Both the position numbers and the translations under genes were made by a program. 64,000 nt of DNA from Paragordius varius. Lineage: Eukaryota; Animalia; Nematomorpha. Below the pieces are notes generated by a model. The model was not told the DNA's origin and made no database searches. It saw only the letters and a program-made list of their open reading frames with translations. The stretch spans positions 3,348,001 through 3,412,000 of the forward strand of contig OZ176053.1 in NCBI GenBank assembly GCA_964247055.1, in the 5' to 3' direction. Of this stretch, positions 25,685 through 55,427 are shown one piece after another; position 1 is the first letter of the stretch, and each line of letters begins with the position of its first letter.

Positions 25685-26301
25685 ATGAAAAATTTGAAAG
25701 TACCGACCCTAATATCTTACATTACTCGTTTACAAATTTATCATTTGCGAAGATTAGATGATATCAAATATAATACACGGTATATTATGGATACGTTTCC
25801 CATTTTGTCCGTAAACTACATCTATTATATTGATAAAAACATACTTTTAAAGTTAGATCCAATATAATCTTTAGCAATTTTCAACAAATACAAGAACACG
25901 ATAATAAAATTTTAGATAATTGGAAAAATATTAATGAGTTTCATTTAACAGCTAATGAACTGCAAAATCTTTTTTTAAAATTAGGGAATGCCAATACCAA
26001 TTCTCTTTTACCCTTTAATTTTGATGAAATCAAGAACCTTTTAATAACAAATAATATGCAAATCGTCACACCTAATTTAAATTATTTGCCACTTAAATCT
26101 AAAAAAGACAGAAAATCAACATTTTTATCATCTATTTTTTCAGAAGCCACATTAAAAAATATTTATAAAGAAAATGATAATTATTTAAAAGAAGACAAAC
26201 TAAATCTTTTACAACATTTAGATGATCATTATAAATATATGCACAAATCTCTTAAAAACATTTGGGTACAAAGATCATCAAATATACCTATAAATTTATG
26301 A
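25685..26301 (+). CDS. Uncharacterised protein (~197 aa, at least 2 exons), divergent from PDCD5
   Basis: Removing a 23-nt GT-AG intron (25852-25874, GTTAGATCCAATATAATCTTTAG) fuses the 25685 ORF in frame with an open frame running to the stop at 26301. No family recognised. Confidence 0.7.
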
Positions 26302-28731: not shown

Positions 28732-31700
28732 ATGGAATTAAATTGTAAAAATAATGTTATTCAAGTGTTTATACATGATGAAAAAACATCTAAACCTCAC
28801 ATTAATAACGATATTACTATTTATTTGTCCGAAACTCAAAATATCAAATCTCTTTTAAAGCAATTATTTGAAACCATTGGATTTAAGCCAAAGAAAAAGT
28901 TTTTCCTTAGAGAGTTTTTTATTTGGTAATGATTATTTAATATTATAGGGTACAGGATAAACATTTTTATAACCTACTCTTTATTTTTAAGATTAAAGTT
29001 ATACAAGTCCTTCAAAGCTTTTTGTTATTGCTTTTGAAGCCAGATTATTTGTTTTCAATAAGCAAAAATATAGATAATACTTTAGTAATTGATCAAAATC
29101 AAATGCAAATTACATTAGCTATAATCGTTCCATATTCTACTCGAACACTTTACATTGATAAAGAAACTCTTACACCAGAATTCGCAAATATATTTGATCC
29201 TAACCATTACAATACATATCTTACGGATCCAACATTATATTTTGATTCCCAACTTCAACCTAGTTTCAAGTTAAGCCTATGTACTTCTAGCAAAAACTAC
29301 ACCGATATATATAATATTTTGGCTAAACTTTGTTTATCACCTTTATTTGAACATCAAGGCATACGTTCCGAAACAACAGAAAATGATATAGATATTTCAA
29401 AAATGACTTTCGTGAAACACATGAAACCTGGTCATCAATTCGTTAAATTCTTAACCAATGTATCCAATATTACAAATTCTGCAGCTATAGATTGTACCAA
29501 TAAAACTAATATATTCAGATATTTGACATATTTTCACGTTAAGCGACAAGTCAATATGGCTAAACGCCAAATGGAATTAAGGATAGGATCGGAAGAAGGC
29601 GATTATACCGATTCGACAAAAAAGACGCATAATAATATTCTTAACAATTTTGATAACAGAATGACAAATTATATCTTCAACCCCCTTATAAATATCTCAT
29701 GCGGTACAAATTCGCACCAAACCGAATTGTCAAATTCCAATCAGGAAGAAAAGTTGGCAGATGACCTCGACTTATACCACCAATGTCTACAATTGGTTCG
29801 AGACACGGATGATTTCATAGGTAATTGTCAAAGTTATGTATTACAATGTATGCATTATCAATCGCCAACATCACGTCTAGAGAATTCGGTCAAAAATGCC
29901 CGTAAAAGGAAAATCGAATCAACTTCAGATTTACCCAAGCGTTCTGATAACCTTTATGAAAAAAGCAACAACCCACAAAATGGTATAGTATTGCGTGATA
30001 TTGAAATGAATAGTATCGATGAGGAAATTGTTGTCTCTAGAAAACTTCGGCATCGAAATATCATGGGTCAAGTTAAAAGTGTATTTATTACTATTTTATG
30101 AAAATATTTGTAAAATTTTGAAAAAGCTATTAATATTTAGGGCTTAAATTACTTTTTTTTATTTATAACATTATTGTATATTAAATTATACTCATTCATA
30201 GCAAATACCCAGCCACACATTGAACAAAAATGGGGATGACATCAAAAATAAACAAAATCCTTGCGGTACAGAAGAAAATTTGTTAGATCGACCCTTTACC
30301 TGTAATCCTCAAAACAAATACTCCATTGAATACAGGCGACTTATTTTTGATTGTATCCGAAGTAATTGCAAATCTTTCCAAATTTACATGGAATCATTGA
30401 TTAACAGACAAAAATACAACCGCTCCAAAAATCCAAATGATACGAAATCAGATGCCACGATTGAAAAGACCCCTGAAAAGGGTGCTAATATCATTCAAAA
30501 CTATGGTACTACTGCAAAAAACGAAAACATAGGCAAATCAGAATCTTATATTTTGGGCCTCTTGAATGCCGATGCAAGTTTTTACAAATTTCTTCATAGC
30601 AATATCCGGTTAGGGATTGAATATCAAAATGCGCTCACAGTAGCCATAAATGTTATGGCTGTCAGTATGGAGTTATTTAATGAAATTTATGCTCATTATC
30701 AATGGTACCAAAATCAAATTGATAGTATATGCCCACCACCTTATACTGATAATTCCGATTTTGAATCCAAAGCCGGTCAAATATCTGAGAATTTAACTCA
30801 ATTTCAAGCCATTTGTCAAAAATATGTGGAAAATTTTGATATTAACTCCCGATGCAGAGGTTTAAATTTTTTTGTCCATTTTAAATTGGTAGAAATATAT
30901 CATAAATACCCATTTTATACATTTGTAGATGAGCGCAAAATTGGATTATACACTCAGGTATTGCAGGGTGGAAGTAATACACTTCTACAAGATCGGAATA
31001 CAGAAATTAAAAATTTATTTGATTTTTTAAAATCCCTAAATGATCAGGAAACCGATTGCAATCAAATTAATAGGAGCTTGAAAACAATATTTTTGGATGT
31101 TTTGCTTCAAATTATTTCGAAAATACGGAATATATACAAGATTCAATGCTCACTATGTTGGAAAATTGTAGAAAAGCCATTTTTTCAAGATATCGAGTAT
31201 AGAATCAATTAATTTATTCATAGTTTTGATATATTTATCTTTTTATTAAAACAATTTTGAGTTTATTCTTTTCTTTATTTGTGCGTAGCAAAGTTTATCA
31301 AGCATTTCAGTCTCATAAAACAGACTTTAAACTATCCCCCAATGAAAAACGGGAAAATAATATTGATGAAGTTTTACAGATTTTTTTTAGCCAATCATCC
31401 AATATTGTAGAGATGCAAAATACATTACATACATTTTATCAAACTTTGGTATCGGAATACCTTGTAAGCCCAACCAAAAAATTTATATTCCATGAATTTA
31501 TTTACGGTAATGAGGTGTCCTTTTCACCCTACAACAAAAGTGACGATTTATTAAGAATGAAATCACCCTTTTCCCGAACATTTCATGAGTTTTCGCCTTA
31601 CCCGTCCATAGATATGGCTTACTCAATGATACAACTTGCCTCTATTTATCTTAAAAAATCTAATCATTTTCAGCAAGTAACATTTATTTTGGTATACTGT

Positions 31701-33542
31701 ATAAGTTAGTAATGTTTTGCATAAATTGTTTTATATTAAAAGTTTTCACACTATTTAGTATATTTTAGTATTATTAAAATTTTATTTGAAGTTATTTATT
31801 GCTTTGTTAGGAAAATAATCACACAAACTCAAATGAACTATCAAACAAAAATAATGTAATCCCATCGTATGATATGGCCATTGCGTATGTTTGTTGTATT
31901 CCTTCCGAATCAAAATCTCAGGCATTAGATTTTTCAGGTTTTGAAAGTTTTATTCAGTATATGAAAAAATCTCGAACTTATTAATATAATATTTGCTTCC
32001 ATAGAGTTAAACTGGCAAATACAGAAAATGGAAGCTGGGAAATGGTTTGATGCTTTTAAAAGCACCCTAACACAATCTTTAACAAACAACCCCAAAATAG
32101 GTTTAAATATAATTTTGATACTAATTGTTATGGACTAGGCTCATTTAATGTAATTAAAAATTAATAGAATTTATATATGTATTTTCGTTAGAAAGGGCTA
32201 TTTATGTGTCTTTTGTTTTTATATTATCTCAATAAAATTAAATAACCAATCACAACATCTGTTTTTTTCAGTCAAAGGTTAAAACCGAGGGAAACAATCA
32301 CATATTTACAAATATCGAGTATCCAATGTTTATTTAATAAAAAATGCGCATATTAGACCCTTTTTTAAATATACGCCGCGAATGTTTTTCATAATAATGA
32401 CATGGGGCGATGGATATGGATTTTATATTAATGATAATGGTTAATTAGTTTGACTTAGTGAAGAAAACATGCAATCACACTCAGCATTTCATTATATATT
32501 GTGTTTTTAAAAGCATAATTGATATTTAGTTTCATCCAAACGGTAACATTGGTTTAAATATAAAATTTAAGTGCATTCAAGTCCCTACTCCAGGCTTTTA
32601 ATCAATATCAAAGCACATTTTTCTTTATATATTATTGGTAATGTTAAACGTATATTTGAATCTATTTAGCACTTCGATTCAAATTGGGGTATCTAAATAC
32701 CCCAGACTAAATTTGATTTAGGATTTTTGAAAAAATATTGAAGGAAACGGTCCCAATTTAAAATGCTTCTATCCTAATAAAAAATACATTAATATGGCAA
32801 AATATCTAAATAGAATTTTGTTTTAAAAAAAAAGTTTTATATCAAACTACTTCGACGCCATTTTGATTTTACAAAATTTTTGCAAAATATCGTCTTCATT
32901 TAATAAGGGTAAAATTAAAGCTAATTTTTTATTTACATCTAACATTGATAGAAATAGAAAAAGCGGTTTATTTAGTCTTATTTTTCAATTTTACCATTGC
33001 ACACATGTCTCGTTGACTAAATTTTTACCTTTCGGTTTTAGCTTAAAATAAGTAATATTAACTATTTTTGAATAATTTTTTTATATATTTCGGTTTATTA
33101 ATGTTATATAAGCGCAAAATTTTGCCATGGTTTCAATTCCTTCCATATTTTTTAAAAAATTTAATTTTAAACAGGCCTGGGGTACTATTTAATTACCCCA
33201 ATTTGAATCGAAGGACTAAAATGAATGTGTTGTATCCAAGTGTTAAATTAAATAATTACTTTTATGTGCTTAGACAATTTCCGAAAATCTTTGCCAGACT
33301 CTGAAGAATTAAACTATAAAAAAAGATTTATTCAAGCATTGTGTGACCTGAAACACATGGGATTCGCACGACCAATGTCTTTCACTCTTGTTAAGGATGA
33401 ATTTAAATCTGTAAAACTATTATCGAAATCATACGAAAAAAACTCCCGCAAAACAATCAGCAGCAAAAAAAATTCACAAGACAAAGATAAAAGTTCTCAA
33501 CTGGAAAAACGTTATTGGTGGGAAGTTTATGTGCACTATTAA
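28732..33542 (+). CDS. ORC3: Origin recognition complex subunit 3-like protein, highly divergent, ~1066 aa as modelled
   Basis: Phase-compatible model: 28732-28925, 28949-30080, 30202-31196, 31289-31676, 31811-31937, 32005-32100, 33274-33542 (some boundaries have alternatives). C-terminal motifs FIFHEFIY, SYDMAIAY, KWFDAFKSTL and KRFIQALCDLKHMGFARP occur in the order of the ORC3 winged-helix region (PLHEVVY, PDICIAY, DWSEAF, RFIRAVSELELLGFIKP in vertebrates, from memory). The N-terminal two thirds were not recognisable. Confidence 0.65.
32670..33242 (-). mobile_element. piggyBac-like MITE, copy 3, in the last intron of the ORC3-like gene
   Basis: Reverse-orientation copy flanked by TTAG / TTAA. 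Confidence 0.78.
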
Positions 33543-33744: not shown

Positions 33745-34916
33745 CATTCCGCCTCATTATTCCTCGGAAAAAGACAACTCCAATCCACAATTTCTTATTC
33801 ATTATACTCTTTCAATGATTCTTCCACCGTTTTTTTCTAAATAGGTCAAAAAATTAAAAACGCTTTATTAATTTTTAGATTAATTTACATGGACACAGTG
33901 CGAAAAAACGGGGATTATATTTGAATTCCATAATCATACTCGAGAGAATGTATTAGGAGTATAAAGAGCTTAAATTTAGCGTAAACCATATCTGTGCCGC
34001 TAATTATATTCATCACGTGAAATTTATGATTGTAATTCGATTTAGGTAAAATTTGATGGCAAGTATTTTTGAATCAAAAATACTAACTAAATACTATTTC
34101 ATTGATTATGATATTTGCCGTTGATACTGCAAAAACCATAAAATAGGCTTAAAATTTCGTCAAAGTATAATAGATGCAAAAAAAATTTTTTTAAATAATT
34201 AATTTCGATGCTAGTGTAGTTATATATTTTTTATCGGAAAATCCCGGTTTTTTGGGTGTTTTAAAAGCGCTTGCCCATTTTACGCGTTAAAAATGTGAGG
34301 ATTTCGATGCCTGTATGAAAAAAATAATATAATGCAAATATATTTTAATAACTGATCCAATATAATATGGGCGAAATTTGTTATTTTTAGTTTTAATTAT
34401 GAAAAAAAAAATATTTACTTGAATAACTCGTAATCCCAGCACTTTAAGCCTCAAGAAAATTTTATACATTTTTCTATTAGAATATTAACTTCAACATGAT
34501 AATTTTTTTCAATTTTTATTTATGCTATTACTGTCAAAAATTTAAAATTTTGAAATAGCTTTATTATAATATAAAAACTTTCAATTGTATTTTTTATATT
34601 TTTTTAAAATATATTATAAATCCCGAAACATTTTTTAACTCATAAAAGGTCTAATCTTTTAAGATAACCCTCTTATATGAATAAGAAATCGACTCCCTGT
34701 CGTCACCTTGGCCATTAGGGTTGGAAAGTTTTTCATAAATTTACTCCACCTCCGAAAAAGAATCTAAAAAAATAAAATTAATTCATTAAATTTAAACAAA
34801 AAGCGTTGTAAAAAATGTATTTAATTTTAGTATTTTAATGGTGAAGGGACAGAACTTACCGGAGTCCATGAATGGTATTTATTATCTTCACTGAAAGTGA
34901 AACGCTTTCCTTGGTT
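33745..34916 (-). pseudogene. Truncated, disabled paralog of the tandem gene family
   Basis: Only three exon homologs remain: the motif exon (starts 34916, +1 frameshift), an acidic exon (starts 34763, GAG TAA stop) and the last exon (starts 33836, extra A). The first two exons are missing. Confidence 0.8.
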
Positions 34917-35879
34917 CTATTTAGAATAACATTCAATATAAACATTGTCCACAATAAAATATTCCAATGAAACAAAAAAAGTATCAGGATTATCATAATG
35001 CTTGTGGTTTTGTCCCTTACGAGTGATTTAAACTTATTTACACGTTTGTGGTGAGTGATCCATATCAGAAAATGTTTCGGATATTCTTATAAATAAATTT
35101 TTTGGTGAAAGCTAAATGCTTCACTAATATATATTATAATGTGACCAGATATTTACTCTGATGGAGTACAAAATATATTTTCTTTTATGAAGAAATGCAT
35201 TTTTACAACCTCATTATAAATATTTTTAGTAGCGTGAGTGATGTGACAAAATTAAAAAAGTCTAAAATTTATACAGAAAAAAAGAAGTAAAAAACTGGAT
35301 GCAAATTGCACCTAATGAAAATATAAAAATAAGTTTTTTACTACGAAAAAAGATTATATCGAAATCATATGCCATATATGAATTTTTAAAATACTATGTT
35401 ACAGATATAACAATTTTATATATATCCGTTTGATAATTATAATAAAAAAAACTTAAATTAACTGAAACTCACTTTCCTAACTTGGTCAACATTTTACTTA
35501 CTAAAATATCATAAATTTATTTTGTGTAGATTTTGAATGTTGAAGCCTCTTTTGCGAAAGCACTGAGTAAAAGGATCATTAGCCCGAGTCTTGCGGTGAA
35601 GTCTAGGATATAGTTCTGTCACTGCTCGAATGGCTACATTTATAAGCGGTTTGACTTGTCCAAACCCCAATTTATTTAAGCAGAAAATAAAATAAATTAA
35701 AAATAGGCCAATCTTAGTTTTTACCTGCAAAATGAACGATTTTTGTTTAGCAGTAAGGTTTTGACAGAGGGTACTCTTACATAATTTTTAATAAAACACA
35801 AAAAAATATTCTGAAATAAGATAATAGATAGAAATAATTTATTTGATGCTTTGTAATCATTAACTTTATATATAAAATC

Positions 35880-37380
35880 AATATTATAAATATAACATAA
35901 ACATGGCGTTGAATAGAAGGATGGTTTGATGGTAAATGTGTGTGCATGTGTGTATGTGAGTTTGAGGGTTGAGTGTTAGAGTGTGAGATGTAACAAAAGA
36001 ATCCAAATCCATCAAATAAAAAAAGTAATCCAAATATAATAAAAAAGGAATCCAAATTTTTTTATATAAAAGCAATAATATAGATAGATAGGTGAAGTTG
36101 TTTTAAGATGAGTGCATGTATGTGAAGTGTTTGAGTAGAGGATAGATGAGGTTGAGTGTGAGGTATCAAAAATCCAAATCCAAAAATAAAAAATAATCCA
36201 AATGTCATAAAAAATGATGATCCAAAAAATGATGAAAATATAAAGAATCCAATTGTATGAAGAATAGAATATATAAATGATGAATGATATGTTGATAACA
36301 TGTGTAGGGGTTGAGAGTGTAGAGGTGAGTGTGAAGTGATATGTGGTTGAAGAAAAAGGGTTGTGTTTGAGTATCCAAAAATATCAAAAATGTCATAAAA
36401 AGTAAAGAATCCAAATCCAATATATATAAAGAATCCAAATCCAATAAAATAAAGAATCCAAACGTTATTGATGAGTGTGATATATGTTGAAAGATAAATG
36501 TGATATGTGAAGAGTGAGTAGATAGGTTTGATTTGTAAGTGTAGGTAGGTGTGGGATGTAAGTAGTATAAAGAATCCAATTGTATAAAAAATAAAATTTG
36601 AATGAGTATGAGATAAGGGTTTGAGTATGAGATGAGACAATCCAAAAATGTCATAAAAAGTAAAAAATCCAAATCCAATTATATAAAGAATCCAAAAATG
36701 TTATAAAAGATGAGTGTGTAGTGTATGTGGTTGAGAAAGGGTGGTGTTTGAGGTATCCAAAATATCAAAAAATGTCATAAAAAGTAAAGGATCCAACAAT
36801 ATAAAAATAAAGAATCCAAAAATGTTATATAATAATTGATGGTGATATAGATGTAAAAAGATAAATGTGATTGGATGTAAAGAGTGAATAGATAGGTTTG
36901 ATTTGTAAGTGTAGGTAGGTGTGGGATGTAAGTAGTTTAAAGAATCCAAATGTATAAAAAATAGAATATATAAATGATGAATAGTGTGAATATGGGTGTA
37001 ATGATGTGTAGATGAGATGTATGGTGAAGAGTTTGAATGAGTGTGAGATGAGAGGTTTGAGTATGAGATGTGACAATCCAAAAATCAAAAAAAATGTTAT
37101 AAAAAAATAATGAATATAAATCAAATATAAAAATAAAGAATCATAAATGTCAATTAAAAGATGAGTGTAACGTAATGTAAAAAGATAAATGTGGTTGATG
37201 TGAAGAGTGAGTAGATAGGTTGTTGTTTGAAGTGTAGGTAGGTGTGGAATGTAAGTTTGACAAAGATGTAAAAGAATAAAGAAGTTGAATGAATCCAAAT
37301 AAGTAAAGGAATAAAATGCATAAAAAATCCAAAATGCATAATAAAAGATAAAATGAGCAATAAAATATTGAAGAAATATT
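35880..37380. repeat. Strand-asymmetric compound repeat downstream of family copy 1
   Basis: Alternating AAAGAATCCAAA-rich and GAGTGTG/GTAGGTAGG-rich blocks, subunit about 120-130 nt. Confidence 0.85.
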
Positions 37381-37431
37381 AAAAATAAAAAAAATAATTA
37401 TAGTTCAAGATTTTTTTCATTCCCCGAATCA

Positions 37432-39336
37432 TCAATCCGCCTCATTCCTCGGGGAAAGACAACTCCAATCCACAACTTCATATTCATTATACTCTTTCAA
37501 TGGTTTCTCCACCGTTTTTTCTAAAAATGTTAATGGTAGAATTAAATAACCCTTCATAATTTATACATTAATTTAAATAAGAATACATTTATTAGTGGAA
37601 AGAGCTTAAATTTAGTTTTACATCCATCACCTCAAAATAGTATAGAATTATTTATCGCACAATACCGGCTATTTTAGAATAATTAACTGGAGAAATATTA
37701 TTAAAATTTTATGGACAAAATTTGCGATTTTCGGTTTTATATGATAAAACTTTGTACTTTATTGACTCGTATATTCCAATAAGTCTCAAAAATCTTATCC
37801 TCTATCAAGATTTTAACTACATTTTTTTCACATCTTATTTAGACTTTTTACTGTTTTTAATTTAAAAAATATTAAAATAGATTGAATTTTTATAATATAA
37901 GCTTTCAGTGGTAATTTTACTATTTATCACAAATTTATATAAATTTCGACACAATTGTTAGCTCATAACCAACGAATTCTATCGTTTAAGCAAAATCCTC
38001 TAAATATTTATATATTAAAAATAAAACAACCTGAAAATATCGACTTCCGATCATCTTCCCCTTCGTCAGCAAAAAGTTTCGCATAAATTTCCTCCACTTC
38101 GGAAAAAGAATCTAAAAAATAAAATTATATCATTTATAACCTTAAATTGGCACAATTCATATCAATTGCAAATTTAAACTTTAAGAATGATTTTAATAAA
38201 AATAATGAGCTATTTTAATAAAAATCAAGATTTTAAAAATATGACTGTCTTTTAAAAAAATATTTGTGCTCACAATCTGATAATTTTATTTTTTAAACAA
38301 ATATCAACCTGAAGATATCGACTCCCAATCATCTTCATTTTCAACTTGGTCATCAACTTTATTATTTAAAAGTTTTTCATAAATTTTCTCCACTTCGGGA
38401 AAAATATCTAAAAAAACATAAAATTAATTTATTTAAAATTATACAAAATGAGTTGTAAAAAATGTTGATTAACAATTTTGGTATTTTACTTGGAGAAGAG
38501 ACAGGACTGACCGGAGTCCATGAATGGTATTGTTTGACTTCACTGAAAGTGACACTCTTTTTTGGCTCTATTTATATATAAACATTTTTATTTTATGGTA
38601 TATAGTAATTTTGATTAAATATATTTTTCAAAATATTTAGCTTATTTTTCATATGGTAATGTATTGTTGATAATATTAGATTTTAAAATCTCACTTGGAT
38701 CCGAAGGTACCTCGGGATGACTTTCCAATCTTTCCCCTTCGTTATTTTTCTTAAAACAGCAAAAAGATATGCGGCATAGATATTTTCTCCAGCCTGTAAT
38801 ATTAATATTTATACTTTATGAATAAAAATGAAAATACCGATTCGGTTTTCGGATATTTAATATAAATAACTGAATTTCGGTCAATGTTAGTAATTAAAAT
38901 ATATATATATATAAAATGATTATTGCCATCACTTAACTTTAAACTTATATTCTGGTCAATAAATATTGTCGAGCCAAATTTTAACAAAAGAATTAAGCCA
39001 ATCAGAATCTATTTAGATCTACCAAAACTACTTAATATTAAACATAAATATAATTTTAATTTGGCAATAACATAAAATCATTAAACTTCCAATTCCAACT
39101 AATCTATGTTATAAATTATGTTTAAACATTAATCTAAGATTTTAAAATTTTGAATTTTTATTTTAGGAAAAAAGGTTAGATGTATTTAAAGAAATATCAT
39201 TGATAAATTTCATCATTAATTTGCTGTTGTGGAAAATTTTGGAAAAAAATTGATATATATGCATACCCTTTCCCTTCTCTTGGATTTCACCGCCATTCGT
39301 CGTTTTCAAATTGAATATCCTTGTAAAAAATTTCAT
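37432..39336 (-). CDS. Tandem family copy 1: uncharacterised 171-aa protein with Cys cluster, KSVTF motif and acidic repeats
   Basis: Exons 39336-39267, 38793-38695, 38567-38490, 38407-38309, 38111-38031, 37520-37432; all introns GT-AG, phase 1. Protein MKFFTRIFNLKTTNGGEIQEKGKGWRKYLCRISFCCFKKNNEGERLESHPEVPSDPKPKKSVTFSEVKQYHSWTPVSPVSSPNIFPEVEKIYEKLLNNKVDDQVENEDDWESISSDSFSEVEEIYAKLFADEGEDDRKSIFSEKTVEKPLKEYNEYEVVDWSCLSPRNEAD*. Confidence 0.88.
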
Positions 39337-39380
39337 AAATTTTGATAATAAAAGTTTTTTTTAAAAAATATTTTTGTAAA

Positions 39381-39460
39381 ATAGCAATGCGAGAGTGTTA
39401 AAAAGTGATTGTTGCTAAATAGAATATAAATATAGGCTTAGGCAGTATGATACCTTATAA
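39381..39460 (-). promoter_or_regulatory. Conserved upstream block (putative core promoter / 5' UTR) of the tandem family
   Basis: ATAGCAATGCGAGAG..AAAAAGTGATTGTTGCTAAATAGAAT..ATAGGCTTAGGCA.TATGA.AC.TTA recurs ~45-125 bp upstream of all four ATGs (also ~51440, ~57830, ~63150), while neighbouring sequence is more diverged. Confidence 0.55.
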
Positions 39461-40009
39461 GATGATTGTTGTCATATAAAATATGGGCTTATAAGTATAT
39501 ATAAAAAGTGATAAAGTTTATCTCAATTCGATTATGCATTTGCTAAAATTTAAACACTCAATTAAAAATGGATTTTGCACTTATAAGCAAAAAGGTAAAC
39601 ACATCGATATCTAAAATATAGAGTCTTCTCAATTAGGAAAATAATCAGCCTTTAAGAAAAATAAGAATTTATTTTAAATTATGCCATTTAAATATTATAA
39701 ATTTTAACATTTAATCCATATGATTTTTAAAAGGGTGCTCAAAAATATAAACCCGCTTTAACTATTTTTTATGTTTTAATATGAAAATAGATGTGCATTT
39801 TATTTAGAAAAATTGTTTAAAAATAAAAATTTTATTAAGATTTTATGAGCTTTTTGCAAATTATGGATTTCCAAACCTTTCGCGAACCGCGCGTTGGACA
39901 CCCCTCTTTTATACGAATTCGTTAACAGATACGTATTAGTTATACCTCACTATTAATTAGATGGCTCATAATTTTACGTAATATGTAAATTATTATTATC
40001 TGTCTATAT

Positions 40010-42738
40010 CAGGGGTGGCCCCACTTTTTTTGTCGCGAGCTTTTTTTTGGCTTTTTTGTTAAAAAAAGAGTTCGCGGTCACCCAGAAATATTTATCAAAA
40101 AAAACTCAATCAACACTTTAAATGATGTATATACCTGCTTTACAGATTAGAGTGACTTGTTTAAACCATTTTAAAATTGTAATTTTTTTATCTATCAACC
40201 AAATACAAAAATAATTTTAATTAAAAGACAACGGGTTATTAACTAACTTAATTTTTTAACCAACATAAAACACTTCAAAATATTTATTTATTAAATTTCT
40301 ATTATATGAAATTTTACAATATAAAAATTTAAACAATGCATTTGAAATTACAGGGGAGAATACATTATGATACAAAAAATAAAAGAAATAAAAAATAGCA
40401 TTCCAATTTAGAACCATAATTTGAACATAAATAAGAGTACATTAAAATTGTATCAGTTTTAATTCTATCCACATATTTTTTAGTAAATCGGCTTTTTCCT
40501 AAGCGAAAATACAACTTGATAAACATCCATATTTAATAAAGAAAAAAATATTTAAAACGCCCGACTGCGAAAAAATTCAGAAAGTTTATCTAAATTAGGT
40601 TCAAATGAAGTCAAAGCAATTCTCAAACATGATTCTAAATGTTTATTAGTTGATTGTGACCTCTGTTTAGTTCTGATAGCATTCATAATTGAAAAAGCCG
40701 ATTCACATAAATATGTGGATCCAAAAAAAGAATTGAATAATGCAGCGGTTTTCCAAATATGGCGGTATTTATCTTTATTTATAAATTTATATATATCTGA
40801 TCCTAATGATTTTAGATGGATATCGCATTTAACATTTATTAATTCCTCTTCCAACTCTGCTAAATTTGGTACACCAAGAAAGTGGCTGAGTTTTTGAGCA
40901 ATATATTCAACATTATTATTATTATTAAATGGGCATGATAAAAAAACGATGTCTTCAAGTTTATTTATAGATGAAAATCGTTTTTCAAAATCATTAATAA
41001 GCAGACCAATATCATCTGCATATTTTTCAAAAGAGAGATTCTCTATTTTTTCAGACACCGCTGCCAGATTAAAAAAATGTTTTAAATCTCGGTTTTTTAA
41101 TTGTGTTTCTACTACTGTTAGTTTCCTTAAAAGATTTTAAAGCACCCATCATATCCATTATTGTTTTATCTTTTCCTTGTAATTGGATGTTTAATTTATG
41201 CAATTTTTCCGTGATATCGCATAAAAATGCAAGATCAAGCAGCCAATCTTGATCTTTCAATTCAGGGTATGAAAATTTAGAATCTCTAAAAAAATTTCTA
41301 TTTGTGGTAAAAGTTGCCTAAAATTAAAAATGCGGCACGACTCAACCACCTTACATCAGTATGTAATAAAAGTTCTCCATATTCCACGCCGCACTCATTT
41401 AACAAAATTCGAAATTGGCGGCGGGACAAGCTTTTTGTTCGAATGGCGTTAACAATTTTAAAACAGGGGTTCATTACATGATGGTATTTTAAAACTTTTG
41501 AACATAAAACTTGATTATGGATTATACAATGGTAATCAATGAACTTGGGAAATGCACTGTGATTTTTACATAAAGCGATAAAGCCGTTGTTAACGCCAAT
41601 CATAGCTGGAGCTCTATCAGTAGTTATAGATGCGAGTTTTACGATGGGAAGTTTCGTATCTGTGATAAATTTATAAAAAGAATCAAAAATATCCTGCCCT
41701 CTGGTTCGTTCGTGGAGAGGTATTATAGTTAATAATTCCTCCTTTGCAGATAAATCACTAAATATCATACGAATAAAAATGCATAATTGGGCGATTCCAA
41801 CATAATCGGTGGACTCATCGAGTTGCAAGGAAAAAAAATACAGTTATTAATATTTTCATGTAAAATTTCATCAAGATTATTACTAATATCTTCAGCCCTG
41901 CGCATAACGGTATTTCTCGATAAGCTCATGCTTTTAATAGCTGTCATAATATTATTTTTGTTATCAAAATTTTCAAATAAAATATCACAAGCGCTAATAA
42001 AGGCTTCTTTAAATATTTCACCATCTTGGAATGGCTTATTGTTCCGAATGAGTATTTCCGCTACCTTGAATGAAGCAATCGTAGCATTTTTAGTCTTTGT
42101 TGTATTTAAGTATGCTACTTTGTGAGGAGGATAATTATTCTTTTAATTCCTTTACTTTAATGTTGCGTTCTTGAGTTTGTAAGGGGTAGTTTTTGGAGTA
42201 ATGTGGATGCATAGATCTATAATGTCTTTCAATATTTGACTTTTTGGGCAAAGCAACAGTACTATTGCATATTAGACAGGTGCATGTTTCATTTATCATA
42301 ATAAAAAAGTATTCATGCTCCCAATCTTTCTTGTATCTGTACAACTTTTTTTGGCTCATTCTAAAGTATAAGTTTTAAAAACCTACTTTTGGTGTATCGA
42401 ATCAAATCTAACTTCACGATTATGCTTCTGATTTATGAATAAGCTTTGCTCAAAGTTTTGATATATTCAAGGGAAATGACTGATTTTAAGTTTTAATGCA
42501 AATGCTCCAAAACATATGAATTATAATTAATAAAATAATTTTTTTACACCCTTTTCTTAGACGTTTTTTTTTAATTTAAACCGTATTTTTTTGTATTTTA
42601 AATTTAAATTCGCTCAGAAGTAGCCAACTATCCGAAAAAAATCAATAAAATTTTTAAAAAAAAAATATTTTCAAGCGGTCACTTTTTGAGTTGTCGCGGT
42701 CACGAAAGTGACAGCGGTCACCTCGTTGGCCACTCCTG
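40010..42738 (-). mobile_element. hAT transposon (Charlie/SPIN/Buster-like), full length 2729 bp, transposase disrupted
   Basis: TIRs CAGGGGTGGCCCCAC / CAGGAGTGGCCAAC (reverse complement of the right end); exact 8-bp TSD GTCTATAT on both flanks. Confidence 0.95.
40552..42359 (-). pseudogene. hAT transposase (GTF2IRD2/ZBED5-like), broken into ~5 ORFs
   Basis: Zn-finger CLIC...IERHY, then LDESTD, ITTDRAPAM, HCIIH, VRWLSR, LAFLCDIT and FGSTYLCESAFS motifs in order. Confidence 0.93.
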
Positions 42739-43807: not shown

Positions 43808-45490
43808 ATGCATATATCTAAAAAATAAATAGAAAATACAATCCCAACTGGGAATTAAAATATGGGTTTAATCAAATTTTCAACAAAGCGGAGTGCATTA
43901 TTTGCAAATTTACGACAAACGGATTTCACGAATATAATTTAAAAAGACATGCCAATACCATGCATTTGGATTTTATTAATATGACTACAGAAATGAAAAT
44001 AATAAAATTAGAATCTTTAAAATATTAATAATCTCCAACCAACAATTTCATTCACGCCTTATCCGATAGTAAAGGCAAGTTATATTGTTGCCAATTTACT
44101 TGCCAAAGAAATGAAGCCTTATTCTCATGGTGAGTTTGTAAAGGAATGCGTACTGAAAATTATAAAATGTCTTTTGCCTAATAAGGTTGAATTAATATCC
44201 AGTATAAGTCTTTCGCCCAATAATATGTGTAGACGATACCATCGCAGAAGAAATTCAACTTTCCCTAAAAGAAAGAATTCAAAATTTGTGGCGTTTTCCT
44301 TGTCATTTGATGAAAGCACAGATATAAACAACATATCACAATTGGTAGTCTTTATTCGAGGGATTGATGAATTTTTTAATAAACAGAAGATATGTTAGGC
44401 TTACTTTCGATGAAAAATACAACTAAGGGAGATGACATGTTTCATGCAATTTAAATATATTGAAAACAATAAATTAAATATGAGGGCGCTATCTTGTTTG
44501 ACCACAGATGGTGCCCCAGCTGTGATGGGAAAAAACAAGGGAACCGTCAAATTATTGTTAAATAAGATGGAATCCGATGGTATTAATATTGACCATATAT
44601 ATATAATGCATTGCATGATTCATCGTGAAAATCTCTGCGCACATGCTCTGACAATGGACAATGTTATGACCGTTGTTATTAAAGTAGTTAATTTTATAAA
44701 ATCTCATGCTTTGAAGTATAGGCAGTTTAAGGAGTTTTTAAAAGAAATTCATTTAGAATATGGAGATCGTATATTTTTTTCAAATGTAAGGTGGCTTAGT
44801 CGAGGGAAATGTCTAAAAAGGTATTATTATTCATTAAAAGAAATAAATATTTTTCTATTGCAGAATAATTATTTGGCAGAGGAATTAACCAATGAAGATT
44901 GGTTGTCAGATTTTTTATGCTTTTCCGTAGATATTACCGAAAAACTAAATCAATTAAATGAATCCTTGCAAAAGCAAGATAATTTAATTGTTGATGCGAA
45001 TAACCATATTAAAGCGTTTTGTAAAATTGACGTTATTTGAATGCCATTTAAAAAAATAATGCTGAACATTTTCCAGAATTTAATAGATTTAAAGCTGGTA
45101 AAACTAACATTTTTTCAAAATATGCAGATCAAATCATATTATCAAAAGCTTTTAATAAACGGGGATATGACAAAATATGAAAAAATATTTGATTTATTTT
45201 TTTGTCCATTCGTTGAAGCTATCAACGCTCCTATTAATTTAAAAATGGAATTACTAGATTTGCAATCCAATAATAAATTAAAATTATTATTTGAACAAAT
45301 AAAATTAAATTTTATAAAAAATATGTAACGTTTGATAAATATCTAATTTAAGAATTTTTGCACAAAGATTAATTTGTGCTTTTGGGTCCACTTTGTGAAA
45401 GTTTTTTTTCTGAAATAAAATATACAAAATCTCTTTAACGTTCTTTATTAACTGATGAAAACTTGGCGAATGAATTGAGATGTGCTGTAT
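43808..45490 (+). pseudogene. hAT transposase (GTF2IRD2-like), frameshifted
   Basis: RKYNPNWE...CIIC...EYNLKRH, then KPYSHGEFVKEC, FDESTD, TTDGAPAV, HCMIHRENLC, VRWLSRG and SVDITEKLN motifs. Confidence 0.9.
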
Positions 45491-47989: not shown

Positions 47990-48870
47990 AAACAATAACA
48001 CATTAGCAATTTAATATGTATGTGATGAGTTATCATATGAAGTATGGCGTTGAATAAAAGGTTGGTGTAATGGTAAATGTGTGTGCATGTGTGCATGTGA
48101 GTTTGAAGGTTGAGTGTTAGAGAGTGAGGCGTATATCGAAGAATCAAAATCCATCAAATAAAAAAATCCAAAATTCAATAAAAAATAAATCCAAAATTTT
48201 TTATATAAAAGCAATGATAATATAGATATATGAGAAGTTTGAGTAGGTAAAGTTGTAATAAAGATGAGTACACGTGAATTTGTGAAGTATTTGAGTGAAG
48301 GATAGAGAATAGATGAGGTTGAGTGTGAGGTATGAAAAATCCAAATCCAAAAAGAAAAAATAATCCAAAATCCAAATGTCATAAAAAAAGATGATCCAAA
48401 AAATGATGAAAATATAAAGAATTCAATTGTATGTAGAATAGAATATATAAATGATGAATGATATAAATAAAGGTAGTGATGTGTTGATGACATGTATAAG
48501 GGTTGAGAGTGTAGAGATGAGTGTGAAGTGATATGTGGTTGAAGAAAAAGGTTTGTGTTTGAAGTATCCAAAATATCAAAAAATGTCATAAAAAGTAAAG
48601 AATCCAAATCCAATATAAAAATAAAGAATCCAAAAGTGTTACATAAAAAGATGAGTGTGATGTAATGTAAAAAGATAGATGTGATTGGATGTAAAGATTG
48701 AGTAGATAGGTTGTTGTTTGAAGTGTAGGTAGGTGTGGAATGTAAGTTTGGCAAAGATGTAAAGGAATAAAGAAGTAGAATAAATCCAAATAAGTAAAGG
48801 AATAAAATGCATAAAAAATCCAAAATGTATAATAACGATGAAATAAATAATAAGATATTGAAGAAATATT
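47990..48870. repeat. Compound repeat downstream of family copy 2
   Basis: Same alternating blocks as 35880-37380, with fewer subunits. Confidence 0.85.
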
Positions 48871-48909: not shown

Positions 48910-51394
48910 TCAATCCGCCTTATTCCTCGGGGAAAGACAACTCCAATCCACAACTTCATATTCATTATACTCTTTCAATGGTTTCTCCACCGTTTTTTCT
49001 AAAAAATTGAATGGTAGAATTAAATGACTTTTCATAATTTATACATTAAGTTGTATAAAAGAAAAATTATTTGAGGAGAGAGATTATCAGGGTTACACCC
49101 ATCACCTCGAAATAGTATTAAAATTATTTTTCGCATAATCCCGGCTATTTTGCAATAATTGACTGGGGAAATATTAGTGACATAATATGGGGAAAATTTG
49201 CGATTTCGGATTTAATTATGATAAAAATTTGTTAGTAAAATGAGTCAAAAATCTTATTTAAGCCTAAATTCACACTCATTCAAACTCTCCACCATACATT
49301 TCATCTACTGATCATTAAACCTATATTTACACTATTCATCATTTATATACTCTAATTTTATTCTTTACATTATTTATTACATCCCACACCTGCCTACACT
49401 TACAAACAAATCCAACCTATCTACTCACTCTTCACATCCAATCACATTTATCTTTTTACATTACATCACACTCATCTTTTAAATAACGCTTTTTTGAATT
49501 CTTTTTATTTATATTGGATTTGGATTCGTTACTTTTATGACATTTTTTGATATTTTGGATACCTCAAACACAACACTTTTGCTTCAACCACATCACATAT
49601 TCTTATTACTCTTTTTTATGTTAAATATATTAAAATTTCGAAATTTTTAATTTTATATAATATAAACTTTCATGGTAATTATTGACACATTTTGTCAACT
49701 TTTAAGCAAAATCCTCTTAATACTCAACATTAAATATAATTAGAAGATATCGACTTCCGATTATCTTCACCTTCGTCAGCAAAAAGTTTCGCATAAATTT
49801 CCTCCACTTCGGAAAAGGAATCTAAAAAAATGAAATTATATTATTTATAACCTTAAAATGAGTTTTGGCACAATTCATATCAATGGCAAATTTAAACTCT
49901 AAAAAAACTCTTAATAAAAATGATGAGCTTTTTAATTAAAATCAAGATTTTTTAAATATGATTGTCTTCTGAAAAAATATTTGAACAACCTGAAGATATC
50001 GACTCCCAATCATTTTCAACTTGGTCATCATCTTTATTATTTAAAAGTTTTTCATAAATTTCTTCTACTTCGGAAAAAGAATCTAAAAAAAATATTATAT
50101 TGTTAACATTGATGTTCGGATTATTACCGATTGCGAAAAATGTTAACTTTTCAAATGCTCTTATTAAAAATATACCGATAATGTAAAACTAAAAGACAAA
50201 TATATTTACAAATGTAACCATACTTATTTAAACCTTGATTAAAGTATATATTTAAGTGTATGAACAATTTTCTGATACCAATTTTAACCAATATAATGAG
50301 TTTTTATAGATGTTTTAAAAAATATATATTTTAATTTTCACTGTTCGTTTAATTTCATTTTAAAAATAAATGAAACCTGAAGATATCGACTCCCAATCAT
50401 CTTCATTTTCAACTTGGTCGTCCTTATTATTTAAAAACTTTTCATAAATTTCCTCCACTTCGGGAAATATATCTAAAAACATAAAATTAATTTATTTAAT
50501 ATTATACAAAAGGAGTTGTAAAAAATGTTTATTAATAATTTTGGCATTTTACTTGGAGAAGAGACAGGACTGACGGGAGTCCATGAATGATATTGATTGA
50601 CTTCACTGAAAGTGACACTCTTTTTTGGCTCTATTTACATATAACATTTGTATTTTATGGTATATAGTTAGATTGATTAAATATATTTTTTGAAATATTT
50701 AACTTATTTTTGTGTATGGTAATGTATTGTTGATAATAATAATTAAAATCTCACTTTGCTCCGAAGGTACCTCGGGATTACTTTCCAATCTTTCCCCTTT
50801 GTTCTTTTTGTTAAAACAGCAAGAAGATATGCAGCATAGATATCTTCTCCAGCCTGTAATATTAACATTAATACTTTATGGTCATAAATAAAATGAAAAT
50901 ACCGACTTGGAACTTTTAAAGTTATATAAATATCTGAATTACGATCAATGTTAGTAATTAAAATATATATATAAAATGATTAGTGCCATCAACTTATATT
51001 GTGGTCAATAAATATTGTCAAGCCAACTATTAACAAAAGAATCAAGTTAATGAGAGTTTAAATTCTAGATTTATTATAAACCAAAGCTATTTAATATTAA
51101 ACATAAATATAATTGTAAGTTGGCAATAACAGTGTAAAAGCATTATTCCAACTAATCGGTAATATAAGTACTGTTTAAAACATAAATCCAAAATTTCGCA
51201 ATTTTAAATTATCTAATATTTTTAATTTTACATTTATTTGACAAAGTTAAATGTATCTAACGAATTTTATTATAAATTTTCTGTTTTTGTGAAATATTTT
51301 TGGAAAAAAAATGTTATATGTGCATACCCTGTCCTTTCTCTTGGGTTTCGCCACCATTTGTCGTTTTCGCACCGAATATCCTTCCGAATTTCAT
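48910..51394 (-). CDS. Tandem family copy 2
   Basis: Exons 51394-51328, 50853-50755, 50630-50553, 50472-50377, 50082-49990, (49821-49741, GT donor lost), 48998-48910. The frame stays intact if the donor-less exon is skipped; motifs YLCCISSCCF, KKSVTF and two DDWESI are present. Confidence 0.8.
49268..49600. repeat. Inverted fragment of the compound repeat inside the last intron of copy 2
   Basis: Its reverse complement matches the repeat (e.g. GAGGTATCCAAAATATCAAAAAATGTCATAAAA, GTAAGTGTAGG, GAGTTTGAATGAGTGTGA). Confidence 0.85.
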
Positions 51395-54179
51395 AAGACT
51401 AAATATTGATGATGAAATTGTTTGAAAAAATATTTTTGTTAAATAGCAATGCGAGAGTTTTAAAAAGTGATTGTTGCTAAATAGAATATATCTCTATAGG
51501 CTTAGGCAATATGAGACCTTAAAAAATGATTGTTGTTATATAAAATGTGGGCTCATAATATAAAAAAGTGATAAAGTTTTTTTAATAATTTTAAACTCTC
51601 ATTAATAATTAAATTCGATCATGCATTTGCCAAAATTTAAACACTCATTTCAATTGGGTAAAAATATTGGTGTCTAATATATAAATTTTCTCTAAAAAGA
51701 AAATATTCAACCTTTATGAAAGAATTAAAATTATGCCAATGACATATTTTAATTATATCCATATTATTTTTAAAAGGGTGCTCAAAAACCTAAACTCGCT
51801 TTAACTATTTACTATGTTTTAATCAAATATATGTCCATTATTAGATAATTAGATTTCAAACATAATACTGTAAAATGCAAACACAATATAACAATGCATG
51901 CCAATTCAATGGGGTGACTGGAAAAACCGTTTAAAAAATAGAAATTTTACTAAGATTTTGTGAGCTTATATTTGCATATTATGGATTTCCAAATTTTTCA
52001 TGGGCCTCGCGTTGGACACCCATTTTTATAGAAATTCGTTAATAAATATGTAATAGTTATACGTGATTGTTACCATTAATTAGATGACCCTTAAAAAATA
52101 TAATATTCATTAAAATGTAAAAAGGCCTCTTACAACATATTGGTCAATAAATCTATAATATACTTTGCTCTAAAACTTATTTTATAAAAAAATGTATTTT
52201 GTGTATACCCTGTCTCATTTAATTCTTTTCGCCATCATTAGTCTTCTTCGCAGCGAATATCCTTTCAAAAAACTTCATTAAATTAAATTCATTTATGAAA
52301 GTTACAGAATTTTTGTTTGATACTTCAATTAATTACATTTTCATTTTTTTCTCCCTGATATATTTTGGAGTTTTTGAATTCAAAGCTCCAAAACACGATT
52401 TAAACTATCAATCGATATCGAAATCTATAAATATTACAGGTAAATTTCATTTTAAAACCTTTCAAAAGTAAATTATTTATATATTGTCTGTTCTATTCAC
52501 TATTTAAAAAATATTAAGGAAAATGGCAGCGAAAAAGTTTGAGATGATAATTTTACATCACAAAAAATTTTTTTATCATGCGCCTAAAAGGCTAAAGAAA
52601 TCTTGTTGTAAAATTTGTGCCCAATGCTAATATTCTTATTAAAGTATTTTCAATTATAAATGACTCTGGTATGTAAAACTACCCCATTTACAATTTAATT
52701 TGTTTCTAATTTTTGATAAAGTAACACTTAATTTTACTAAACTTCGATATTGAAATCAAGTATTAAATAAAAGAATAGTGCGTTGTTGAAATGTCTTTAT
52801 CGAAGTAAGCATGTATTTGTCTGCCGCCGAATTTTATTTCGGCAATCAAAATTTTTTAAAAAGAGACAACGGGCCGGGTGAACCCGGAGTATTATAATAA
52901 ATATATTTGAGGGGTCATTTTGTTAGTCTTATTATGACATTTCAATCACACTTGTTTAAAAAAGTTTTTTGCCATGGTACGAAATTCGAAAATATTTCAT
53001 AGCAATTTGAGACCGATTTTCATACTGGTCAAATCCGAATATTCGATAAATTAGTACGCAAGTTTTAAACTTCAGCTATGTTGAAAGACGCTTCGTGCGA
53101 TAATATAATTTATATTCAAAGTTTTAACCTATGTTGTTCCCTATTTAGGGCAATATAGGGGAAGATGAGTCAACTAACAAGATTTCATAGCAGATATAGG
53201 ACATCTCAAAGGGCATTGCAAAAATTAATTTTGTAACGCAGGGGAGTCCAACACAAATGGCTTTGCGGGCCGCATTTGAAAAATATATGGGCATTCATAA
53301 ATATTTATTTAGTGTATATGAAATATAAACAATATAATTTTGTTTATTTCACCAATTTTTGCATTTCCAATTTTAATGACATATTATATTGAGGAATTTG
53401 TTTAAATTTTACTGGGACCAATTTAAAAATGAAAATGTGCATTAACGTAAGAAACGTCAGTGTAAATAACTTTCCTAACTATTGGTCTCCCAAGGATATA
53501 GCTTTAATGGCACGTGTAGTATCGTACTTTAGTTGACTCTAACCCAATTTTATTCCATAAATAAGCTCAATTAAATATGAATATATTTTGTTTTAAAGTT
53601 ATTTTTCATATACATAGTTAGAAAATCTAGATTCATATAACAAGGGTTGGACCTAGCGCGATACATACATTTATTAATGAATAAATAATATCCATTTTAT
53701 TTGAATTTACAGAAAATTGACTAAAAGCCAACTTTTTTTATTTTTATATTATATTCTAATTTGAATAGATGAAGTGTTCATAACTTCTGATGCCGTTACA
53801 TTTTTCGAAATGATAAAATAAATAATGAGTTTAAAACTTGCTTTTCCTAAAGAGTAGGATCTTAACTTTTATTAAGGACTTTAAGTAAGCTTTAACACTT
53901 GTCTGACCAGGGACAGTTATAATGAGAAAAAGTGGTCGTTTTAACTTCAAAAGGCCAATTTAACCAGGTTGTGAAAAAATAATTTTTTTATCATAGAAAT
54001 TGAATCAATCCAAATGGAATTATGTGAATTTTCCCTAGTTATCTTTTCAATTAAAATTATAAATTTTTTTAGAACCGATACATGCAGAAATTAAAAAATC
54101 GTTGTAATTTAAAATAGGTATAATTTATTTGTTACTTTAAGAATCATTAACTTTATACATAAAATTAACATTCAAAATA

Positions 54180-55380
54180 ACATTAACAGTATAATATTAA
54201 GAATTTAATATGTAGTATTTGATGAGTTATGATATAAAGTATGGCGTTAAAAAGGATGGTGTAGTGGTAAATGTGTGTGCATGTGTGTATGTGCGTTTGA
54301 GGGTTGAGTGTTAGAGTGTGAGGCGTGGCATCAAAGAATTCGAATTCATCAATTAAAAAAAGTAATCCAAAATTCAATAAAAAATGAATCCAAAATTATT
54401 TATATAAAAGCAATAATAATATAGATATATGAGAAGTTTGAATAGGTAAAGTTGTAATAAAGATGAGTGCAGGTTGTTAAGTGTTTGAGTAGAGATGGGA
54501 GGTTGAGTGGAGGTTATAAAAAATCCTTATCCAAAAAAGAAAAAATAATCCAAAATCCAAATGTCATAAAAATGGTGATCCAAAAAATGATGTAAATATA
54601 AAGAATCCAATTGTATAAAAAATAGAATATGTAAATGATGAATGTTGTCAAAAAAGGTAATAAAATGTTGATGACATGTGTAAGGGTTGAGAGTGTAGAG
54701 TTGAGTGTGAAGTGATATGTGGTTGAAAAAAAAGGGTTGTGTTTGAGTATCCAAAAATCAAAAAATGTCATAAAAAGTACAGAATCCAAATCCAATTAAA
54801 TATAAAGAATCCAAATCCAATATAAATATAAAGAATCCAAATATGATATATAAAAGATGAGTGTAATATATGTAAAAATATAGTTGATTGGATGTGAAGA
54901 GTGAGTAGAGAGGTATGATTTGTAATAGGTAGTTGTGGGATAGTAGTTTAAAGAATCCAAATGTATAAATAATAGAATATATAAATGATCAGTAGTGTGA
55001 ATATGGGTGTAATGATGTGTAGATGAGATGTATTGTGGAGAGTTTGAATTGAGTATGAGATAAGGGTTTGAGTAAGAGATGTGACAATCCAAAAATCAAA
55101 TAATGTCATAAAAAGTAAAGAATCCAAATATAAAAATAAAAATAAAGAATCCAAAAGTGATTAATAAAGGTATGTGATGTAATGTAAAAAGATAAATGTA
55201 ATTGGATGTAAAGAGTGAGTAGATAGGTTTGATTTGTAAGTGTAGGTAGGTGTGGAATATAAGTTTGACAAAGATGTAGAAGTAGAAGGAATCCAAATAT
55301 GTAAAGGAATAAAATGCATAAAAAATCCAAAATATATGATAAAAGATGAAACAAGTAATAAAATGTTGAAGAAATATTAA
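54180..55380. repeat. Compound repeat downstream of family copy 3
   Basis: Same alternating blocks as the other copies. Confidence 0.85.
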
Positions 55381-55427
55381 AAATAAAATTATTATAGTTG
55401 AAGAATTTTTTTGTGTTCCCCGAATCA

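Follow-up and report, generated by a model that had tools for sequence, protein, structure and literature searches.

An orphan tandem gene family of Paragordius varius and a candidate PP1 docking site in its disordered products

A 64,000-nucleotide stretch of the genome of the nematomorph Paragordius varius (GenBank assembly GCA_964247055.1, contig OZ176053.1, positions 3,348,001 to 3,412,000; here called the window, with a base composition of about 25% G+C) carries a tandem array of closely similar small genes, and the question it raises is what a family of short proteins without detectable relatives might do. The initial annotation, made from the sequence alone, had proposed a largely disordered, lipid-anchored adaptor that would use an RVxF docking site to bring protein phosphatase 1 (PP1) to membranes destined for ATG8-dependent turnover, with ATG8 bound by an LC3-interacting region (LIR). 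We find that the genes of the array are real and evolve under moderate purifying selection, and that the four intact ones are a lineage-restricted, tandem-amplified orphan family. For the products we tentatively favour a membrane-tethered PP1-targeting subunit, possible though short of probable, in which a basic and probably S-acylated head and one RVxF module would be followed by an acidic repeat tail that binds another partner. The narrower PP1-to-autophagy adaptor agrees with parts of the sequence but is improbable.

A tandem array of multi-exon genes under purifying selection

Six-frame motif searches and self-BLAST revealed a unit of about 5-6 kb repeated along the minus strand of the window, which holds four intact tandem copies (A to D), one pseudogene (copy E) and one stray exon 1 (Table 1). 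The first two copies are spaced 12 kb apart because transposase-like open reading frames (ORFs) were inserted between them. A multiple alignment of the units, combined with explicit splice boundaries, gives a gene model of six to seven exons with GT-AG introns in which every internal exon is of phase 1-1; in copies A to D the spliced exons yield uninterrupted ORFs and all splice sites of the models are intact. Exon 1 measures 67-70 nt. Its frame from ATG to donor is preserved in each of the four genes, of which copy B has lost 3 nt by an in-frame deletion. The repeat exon E4 is present two or three times per gene (E4a, E4b and E4c): copies C and D have three, and copy B has two usable ones, the donor site of its E4c (about 49822-49745) having been lost. 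Since all internal exons are of phase 1-1, any number of repeat exons keeps the frame. No exon is longer than 33 codons, and genes of this kind are therefore easily missed. The interval picked out by the initial annotation, 38309-38793, corresponds to the GT/AG-bounded exons 2-4a of copy A; exon 1, which joins exon 2 in the frame used there, and E4c had escaped it. Each of the four copies encodes, on the minus strand, the peptides that it listed, with small corrections that are given below.

The pattern of differences among the copies argues that the proposed frame is coding. Of 597 exon columns 72 are variable, against 132 of the 567 columns in introns 1-3 (Fisher p = 5e-7). The five indels in exons measure 3 or 6 nt and preserve the frame, whereas in introns only 13 of 37 have a length that is a multiple of three. 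The variable sites fall on codon positions 1, 2 and 3 in the ratio 21/16/35 (p = 0.018). The ratio of nonsynonymous to synonymous divergence (dN/dS) is 0.24-0.54 in five of the six copy pairs. Among exons, the fraction of invariant columns is highest in the last exon, E5 (0.97), followed by E3 (0.93), and reaches up to 0.90 in E2. That the array is silent, a series of recently duplicated, decaying or transposon-associated ORFs without function, is decidedly improbable: the want of RNA support, the one pseudogene copy, the lost donor in copy B, the stray exon 1 with its stop and the transposase-like ORFs within the array would all fit such a reading, but the constraint on exons relative to introns, the in-frame exon indels, the third-position enrichment and the splice sites kept intact in four copies stand against it.

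Two further features of the gene region deserve mention. From an internal ATGG in exon 1 (39267-39300 onward, minus strand) a +1 frame is open through E2 and E3 into E4a in all four copies, and its product would be very basic; this alternative frame of 81-82 codons was rejected because variation lands on its second codon position. Intron 3 (38408-38489 in copy A, 56867-56947 in copy C) has about 88-90% invariant columns, a level of conservation equal to that of the exons on either side. The copy C intron spans 81 nt without an in-frame stop, and E3, the intron and E4a together form a single 93-codon ORF. Possible explanations are gene conversion and the retention of the intron in an isoform.

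Searches for relatives used either exon pieces or the 93-aa read-through ORF of copy C, which lowers their sensitivity and means that remote relatives could be missed. With this scope, every exon peptide searched separately and the 93-aa ORF returned no Pfam family at E values up to 10, and no match to the Pfam profiles of PP1 regulator families (Inhibitor-1/DARPP-32, Inhibitor-2, Inhibitor-3/Ypi1, the GADD34 PP1c-binding region, CPI-17 and the CBM21 G-subunits). A word-based protein search with the 93-aa ORF gave no candidate, an exhaustive phmmer search against 1.84 billion representatives gave no match at E <= 0.001, and none of 507 pattern matches in a scan of metagenome contigs was confirmed. 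A PDB sequence search with E3 and E4b returned only chance matches, to designed repeat proteins.

A basic head and a candidate PP1 docking module

The products are strongly polarised in charge, with a net +5 to +8 over the first 58 residues and -15 to -29 over the remainder. All four fall on the disordered side of the charge-hydropathy criterion, a composition-based measure, in agreement with the largely disordered product that had been expected. They contain no transmembrane segment (maximum 19-residue Kyte-Doolittle mean, 0.16), and a signal peptide or transmembrane anchor was rejected on hydropathy. The only hydrophobic 9-mer of the protein is a Cys cluster encoded by exon 2 and starting at residue 28-30, which reads YLC(C/R)IS(S/F)CCF followed by K/N-K-K/N; in copy A the basic run is KKN, where xKK had been given. 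To gauge chance levels for this and the other motifs, we shuffled each protein's own composition, and the pattern C.{0,4}CC appeared in 0.2-0.4% of the shuffles. Lying beside basic and hydrophobic residues in a protein with no other membrane anchor, the cluster has the kind of context that would favour S-acylation. GAP-43 and SCG10 are disordered proteins of comparable build, N-terminally S-acylated, with a basic head and an acidic tail. The orphan products resemble them in having a Cys cluster beside basic/hydrophobic residues near the N-terminus, an acidic disordered tail and no transmembrane segment; they differ in that the cluster is displaced from the extreme N-terminus, that the acylation is putative and that there is no homology.

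Exon 3 encodes the docking-type site, KSVTF in copies A, B and D and KCVTF in copy C, followed by SEV(N/K)QYHSW and TPVSPVSSP. RVxF is the commonest PP1 docking motif, its RV[S/T]F forms are phospho-regulated, being switched off by phosphorylation, and a second hydrophobic contact (PhiPhi) is listed among PP1 motifs (PMC8786283). The Thr in KSVTF would place the site in the RV[S/T]F class. The Y-H pair found at +6/+7 after the site in every copy is a candidate PhiPhi contact, judged by the spacing of that contact relative to RVxF. Further, the site is flanked by basic residues upstream (KPKK) and acidic residues downstream (SE), and it lies in a region predicted from composition to be disordered.

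How far such a match can be trusted depends on the pattern used. Both KSVTF and KCVTF match the loose consensus [RK]-x(0,1)-[VI]-{P}-[FW] as well as the strict one, [HKR][ACHKMNQRSTV]V[CHKNQRST][FW]. The initial annotation had itself cautioned that short motifs also occur by chance, and the consensuses it quoted bear this out: the loose RVxF pattern is carried by 37-46% of shuffles and the loose LIR core by 97%, so these loose patterns are uninformative. The strict RVxF pattern occurs in 2-3% of shuffles, and in 0.4-0.6% when combined with a hydrophobic pair 4-7 residues downstream.

In the PP1-targeting reading, electrostatics and S-acylation would let the net-basic N-terminal third, with its Cys cluster, tether the protein to a membrane on its cytosolic side; the single KSVTF-x5-YH module would dock the PP1 catalytic subunit in the RVxF groove, and the acidic tail, in which two to three helix-and-acidic-motif units are followed by a related C-terminal exon, would engage a second partner (ATG8 or another protein) or substrates. 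A precedent for so economical a design is LpPIP of Legionella (Lpg1625), a small membrane-anchored protein in which a single lysine-preceded RVxF is the sole PP1 contact and suffices to relocalise active PP1 (PMC12313075). The orphan family would share with it the small size and the putative pairing of a membrane anchor with one lysine-preceded RVxF. The two are not homologous, however: LpPIP, an effector from a bacterium, is tail-anchored by a C-terminal transmembrane segment, whereas the orphan proteins are animal, with an N-terminal Cys cluster, no transmembrane segment and a long acidic repeat tail. With the PP1-interacting proteins spinophilin, NIPP1 and PPP1R15 (PMC8786283) the likeness lies in a disordered K-x-V-x-F whose N-flank is basic and whose C-flank is acidic, in the Thr of the RV[S/T]F subclass and, as a candidate second contact, in the aromatic/His pair 6-7 residues downstream; unlike them, the orphan family has no folded substrate-recruiting domain, and Pfam shows on none of its exons any homology to a family of PP1-interacting proteins. 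We regard this new orphan family as a candidate for the PP1-interacting disordered proteins, a known class that is defined by motifs.

The repeat units and the second partner

An AlphaFold2 single-sequence model of one repeat unit (E4b of copy D, 33 aa; mean predicted local distance difference test score 69.5) places a helix at residues 3-17 (ISEVEEIYKKLSNNK), followed by coil that includes the acidic part with DDWESI. E4b and E4c are clearly homologous (z = 11) at about 55-60% identity, and on this comparison the duplication of the repeat exon long predates that of the gene. The segments kept across the split between E4a/b and E4c are the helix FSEVEEIYxKL and the ending DD-x-x-SI-S-S. The tryptophan of the acidic motif is Arg in E4c everywhere (DDRKSI(S/F)S in copies A, C and D, DNRKSISS in copy B and DDRESIS in the pseudogene), and the aromatic residue for an ATG8 pocket therefore does not belong to the core that the module has conserved. 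A weak similarity to the repeat unit is seen in E3 (z = 3.5, p = 0.007) and in E5 (p = 0.017), and these two exons share E-[VY]-N-x-Y ... W-x-x-[VIL]-S-[SP]. The idea that the RVxF exon E3 is itself a diverged repeat exon, for which these similarities are suggestive only, originated in a MAFFT alignment of exon pieces on the copy C backbone that placed E3 on the E4 repeat; this alignment was not used as a query.

This history bears on the reading that all of the motifs are fortuitous, which we regard as a substantial though somewhat less likely alternative. The family would then comprise orphan disordered proteins, for example a fast-evolving reproductive or stage-specific protein, which they could be, whose functional unit is the helix with its acidic tail (FSEVEEIYxKL ... 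DD-x-x-SI-S-S) and whose partner has nothing to do with PP1 or ATG8. What survives the old duplication, in the comparison of E4a/b with E4c and in the pseudogene, is the helix segment together with DD..SI.S and not the tryptophan; the weak resemblance of E3 and E5 to the repeat unit and the ease with which the loose RVxF and LIR patterns arise in shuffles point the same way, and tandem amplification, exon duplication and the lack of a homologue are typical of young lineage-specific genes. What speaks for PP1 docking instead is that the strict RVxF with its downstream pair is rare by chance, has the flanks expected of such a site and lies in the second most conserved exon.

The acidic motif DDWE(S/A)(I/V), found as DDWESI, DDWEAI and DDWESV where the initial annotation had allowed only Ile at the last position, occurs in E4a and E4b, once or twice per protein, and EYEVV is located in the last exon (peptide ..EYNEYEVVDWSCLSPRNEAD). 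In the full model built on the initial annotation an S-acylated adaptor would bring PP1 to ATG8-decorated membranes, with DDWESI and possibly YEVV/WSCL of the last exon acting as LIR; we judge it improbable. Like the LIR of p62, DDWE(S/A)(I/V) does have acidic residues ahead of a [WFY]xx[LIV] core, and nearby serines could tune binding (PMC8786283); the motif falls within the coil of the repeat, and the pattern [DE][DE]W..[LIV] occurs in 3-4% of shuffles. The claimed acidic-W-x-x-[IV] pattern is thus present, but the replacement of its tryptophan in E4c of every copy means that it is not what the repeat has conserved. In the second unit of copy B the acidic run before the tryptophan is shortened (ENDWESI), and W-x-x-[LIV]-S-[SP] also fits E3 (WTPVSP), with a proline inside the core. 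Compared with autophagy receptors that carry an acidic W-type LIR (p62 DDDWTHL; PMC8786283), the orphan products share acidic-acidic-W-x-x-[IV] in a disordered stretch with neighbouring serines, and differ in that the Trp is not in all units, that they have no cargo- or ubiquitin-binding domain and that they lack a link to any autophagy gene. No feature connects the locus with autophagy, and such a link is unsupported. The initial annotation knew of no described protein with this layout, and our full-text literature search likewise found none in which RVxF and LIR are described together, which also counts against an adaptor of this type. A family of lipid-anchored disordered adaptors, tandem and without relatives, that recruit PP1 to ATG8-positive membranes by means of an RVxF site and multivalent acidic W-x-x-I motifs is a very improbable outcome; if true, it would be a phosphatase-recruiting autophagy adaptor of a kind so far undescribed.

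The same acidic motifs can be read as ligands of kinesin-1 light chains, of the W-acidic or Y-acidic type, in which case the protein would be an adaptor that links membrane cargo to kinesin. The Trp and several tyrosines are indeed flanked by acidic residues (DDWE, EEIYE, EYNEYE), and both motif classes bind the tetratricopeptide repeat (TPR) groove of the kinesin light chain (PMC6214655). However, Leu or Met is expected at p-2 of the tryptophan in a W-acidic ligand, the solved one of SKIP having a leucine there (PMC6214655), whereas this position is Asp in every EDDWE unit and Asn in the ENDWE of copy B; described Y-acidic ligands are C-terminal, whereas EEIY lies inside the predicted helix. 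We consider a kinesin adaptor extremely improbable.

Several observations weigh against the PP1-targeting subunit itself. The motifs were picked post hoc among hundreds of short-motif classes, and the per-motif chance figures therefore overstate their significance. No orthologues were detected in our searches and the copies compared are paralogues; as their exons are only 7-8% diverged (about 93% identical), conservation of the motifs across the four copies is weak evidence. Even within this set two copies have Arg in place of the second Cys in the cluster, and copy C has Cys in place of the Ser before the valine of the docking site. The only diverged copy, the pseudogene, reads KRFTF at that site. 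The A-C pair has a dN/dS of 1.41. If E3 is a diverged repeat, FSEV may be inherited repeat sequence and not part of a dedicated docking site. As for transcription, no RNA-labelled run contained the locus, and two small contig sets guessed to be RNA gave no match to 37300-39500 even at 80% likeness.

The surroundings of the array and the meaning of the family

A conserved block sits 50-150 bp upstream of E1 and is a candidate promoter. Within it the word CAACAATCA is found eight times in the 64-kb window against 0.9 expected, and all eight occurrences lie upstream of exon 1, two per copy. The two words of a copy are 57 bp apart, about 70 and 127 bp upstream of the ATG (in copy A at 39406-39414 and 39463-39471), and the pair is a candidate for a transcription-factor site pair in the promoter block. 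Two sequencing runs labelled as other organisms proved to consist of DNA contigs partly identical to the window, and hence provided no comparison between species.

Copy E shows what decay of the unit looks like. It has in-frame stops in its E4c-like exon (EVE*IY) and its E5-like exon (NE*E), and a search for E1, E2 and E4a in this copy detected none of them. A stray exon-1 remnant at 52207-52278 (minus strand) reads MKFFERIFAAKKTNDGEKN and then stops; no other exon accompanies it in its place between copies B and C. The duplicated unit also includes, downstream of each gene copy, a block of degenerate repeats of 23-26 bp and of roughly 300 bp. These blocks are strongly strand-skewed, with a plus-strand GC skew of up to +0.37, and contain long ORFs without stops that are rich in H, L, T, S and F.

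The transposase-like ORFs between copies A and B lie at 40552-41828 (minus strand) and 44432-45040 (plus strand) and show RWLSR-type motifs by eye; neither has a Pfam match at E <= 0.01. At 29022-31709 on the plus strand three successive long ORFs (359, 330 and 150 aa), unusual at 25% G+C and without a Pfam match, may be large exons of another gene or a mobile element. An exon-sized ORF at 26056-26298 (plus strand) gives a weak match of the Vps5/sorting-nexin BAR-like type, which at E = 0.003 falls short of the Pfam cutoff.

Table 1. Gene copies, exons and associated sequences of the array, in coordinates of the window
Feature	Position	Strand	Description
Copy A	37432-39336	minus	171 aa product
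Copy A exon 1	39267-39336	minus	MKFF..RIF..; 23 codons + 1 nt, ends in phase 1; donor GTATGC
Copy A exon 2	38695-38793	minus	GWRKYLCRISFCCFKKN..; Cys cluster in basic context; phase 1-1; AG/GT boundaries
Copy A exon 3	38490-38567	minus	KPKKSVTFSEVKQYHSWTPVSPVSSP; RVxF-like site, YH pair, three S/T-P sites; phase 1-1
Copy A exon 4a	38309-38407	minus	Repeat unit; predicted short helix EVEKIYEKLL, acidic tail ending DDWESISS; phase 1-1
Copy A exon 4c	38031-38111	minus	Older repeat unit DSFSEVEEIYAKLF..DDRKSIFS, without tryptophan; phase 1-1
Copy A last exon (E5)	37432-37520	minus	EKTVEKPLKEYNEYEVVDWSCLSPRNEAD, then stop codon
Copy A conserved upstream block	39384-39487	minus	Conservation 0.72-0.85; candidate promoter
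Copy B	48910-51394	minus	173 aa product
Copy B exons	E1 51394-51328, E2 50853-50755, E3 50630-50553, E4a 50472-50377, E4b 50082-49990, E5 48998-48910	minus	
Copy C	55428-57778	minus	202 aa product
Copy C exons	E1 57778-57709, E2 57219-57121, E3 57025-56948, E4a 56866-56771, E4b 56468-56373, E4c 56176-56096, E5 55516-55428	minus	
Copy D	60777-63106	minus	202 aa product
Copy D exons	E1 63106-63037, E2 62572-62477, E3 62379-62302, E4a 62219-62124, E4b 61825-61727, E4c 61529-61449, E5 60865-60777	minus	
Copy E, pseudogene	33747-34931	minus	E3-like exon reads KRFTF, not KSVTF
3' repeat blocks	36000-37300; 48000-48800 (inverted partner 49270-49600); 54300-55430; 59700-60650		

If the motifs are not docking sites, the array adds another orphan disordered family, whose value would lie mainly in annotation. 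If the docking site is real, the family would be a PP1-targeting subunit born in one animal lineage, built of nearly nothing but short linear motifs and enlarged by exon duplication; the phase 1-1 design of its exons allows the number of motifs to change with the frame unbroken. It would then offer a clean example of how new phosphatase regulators originate.

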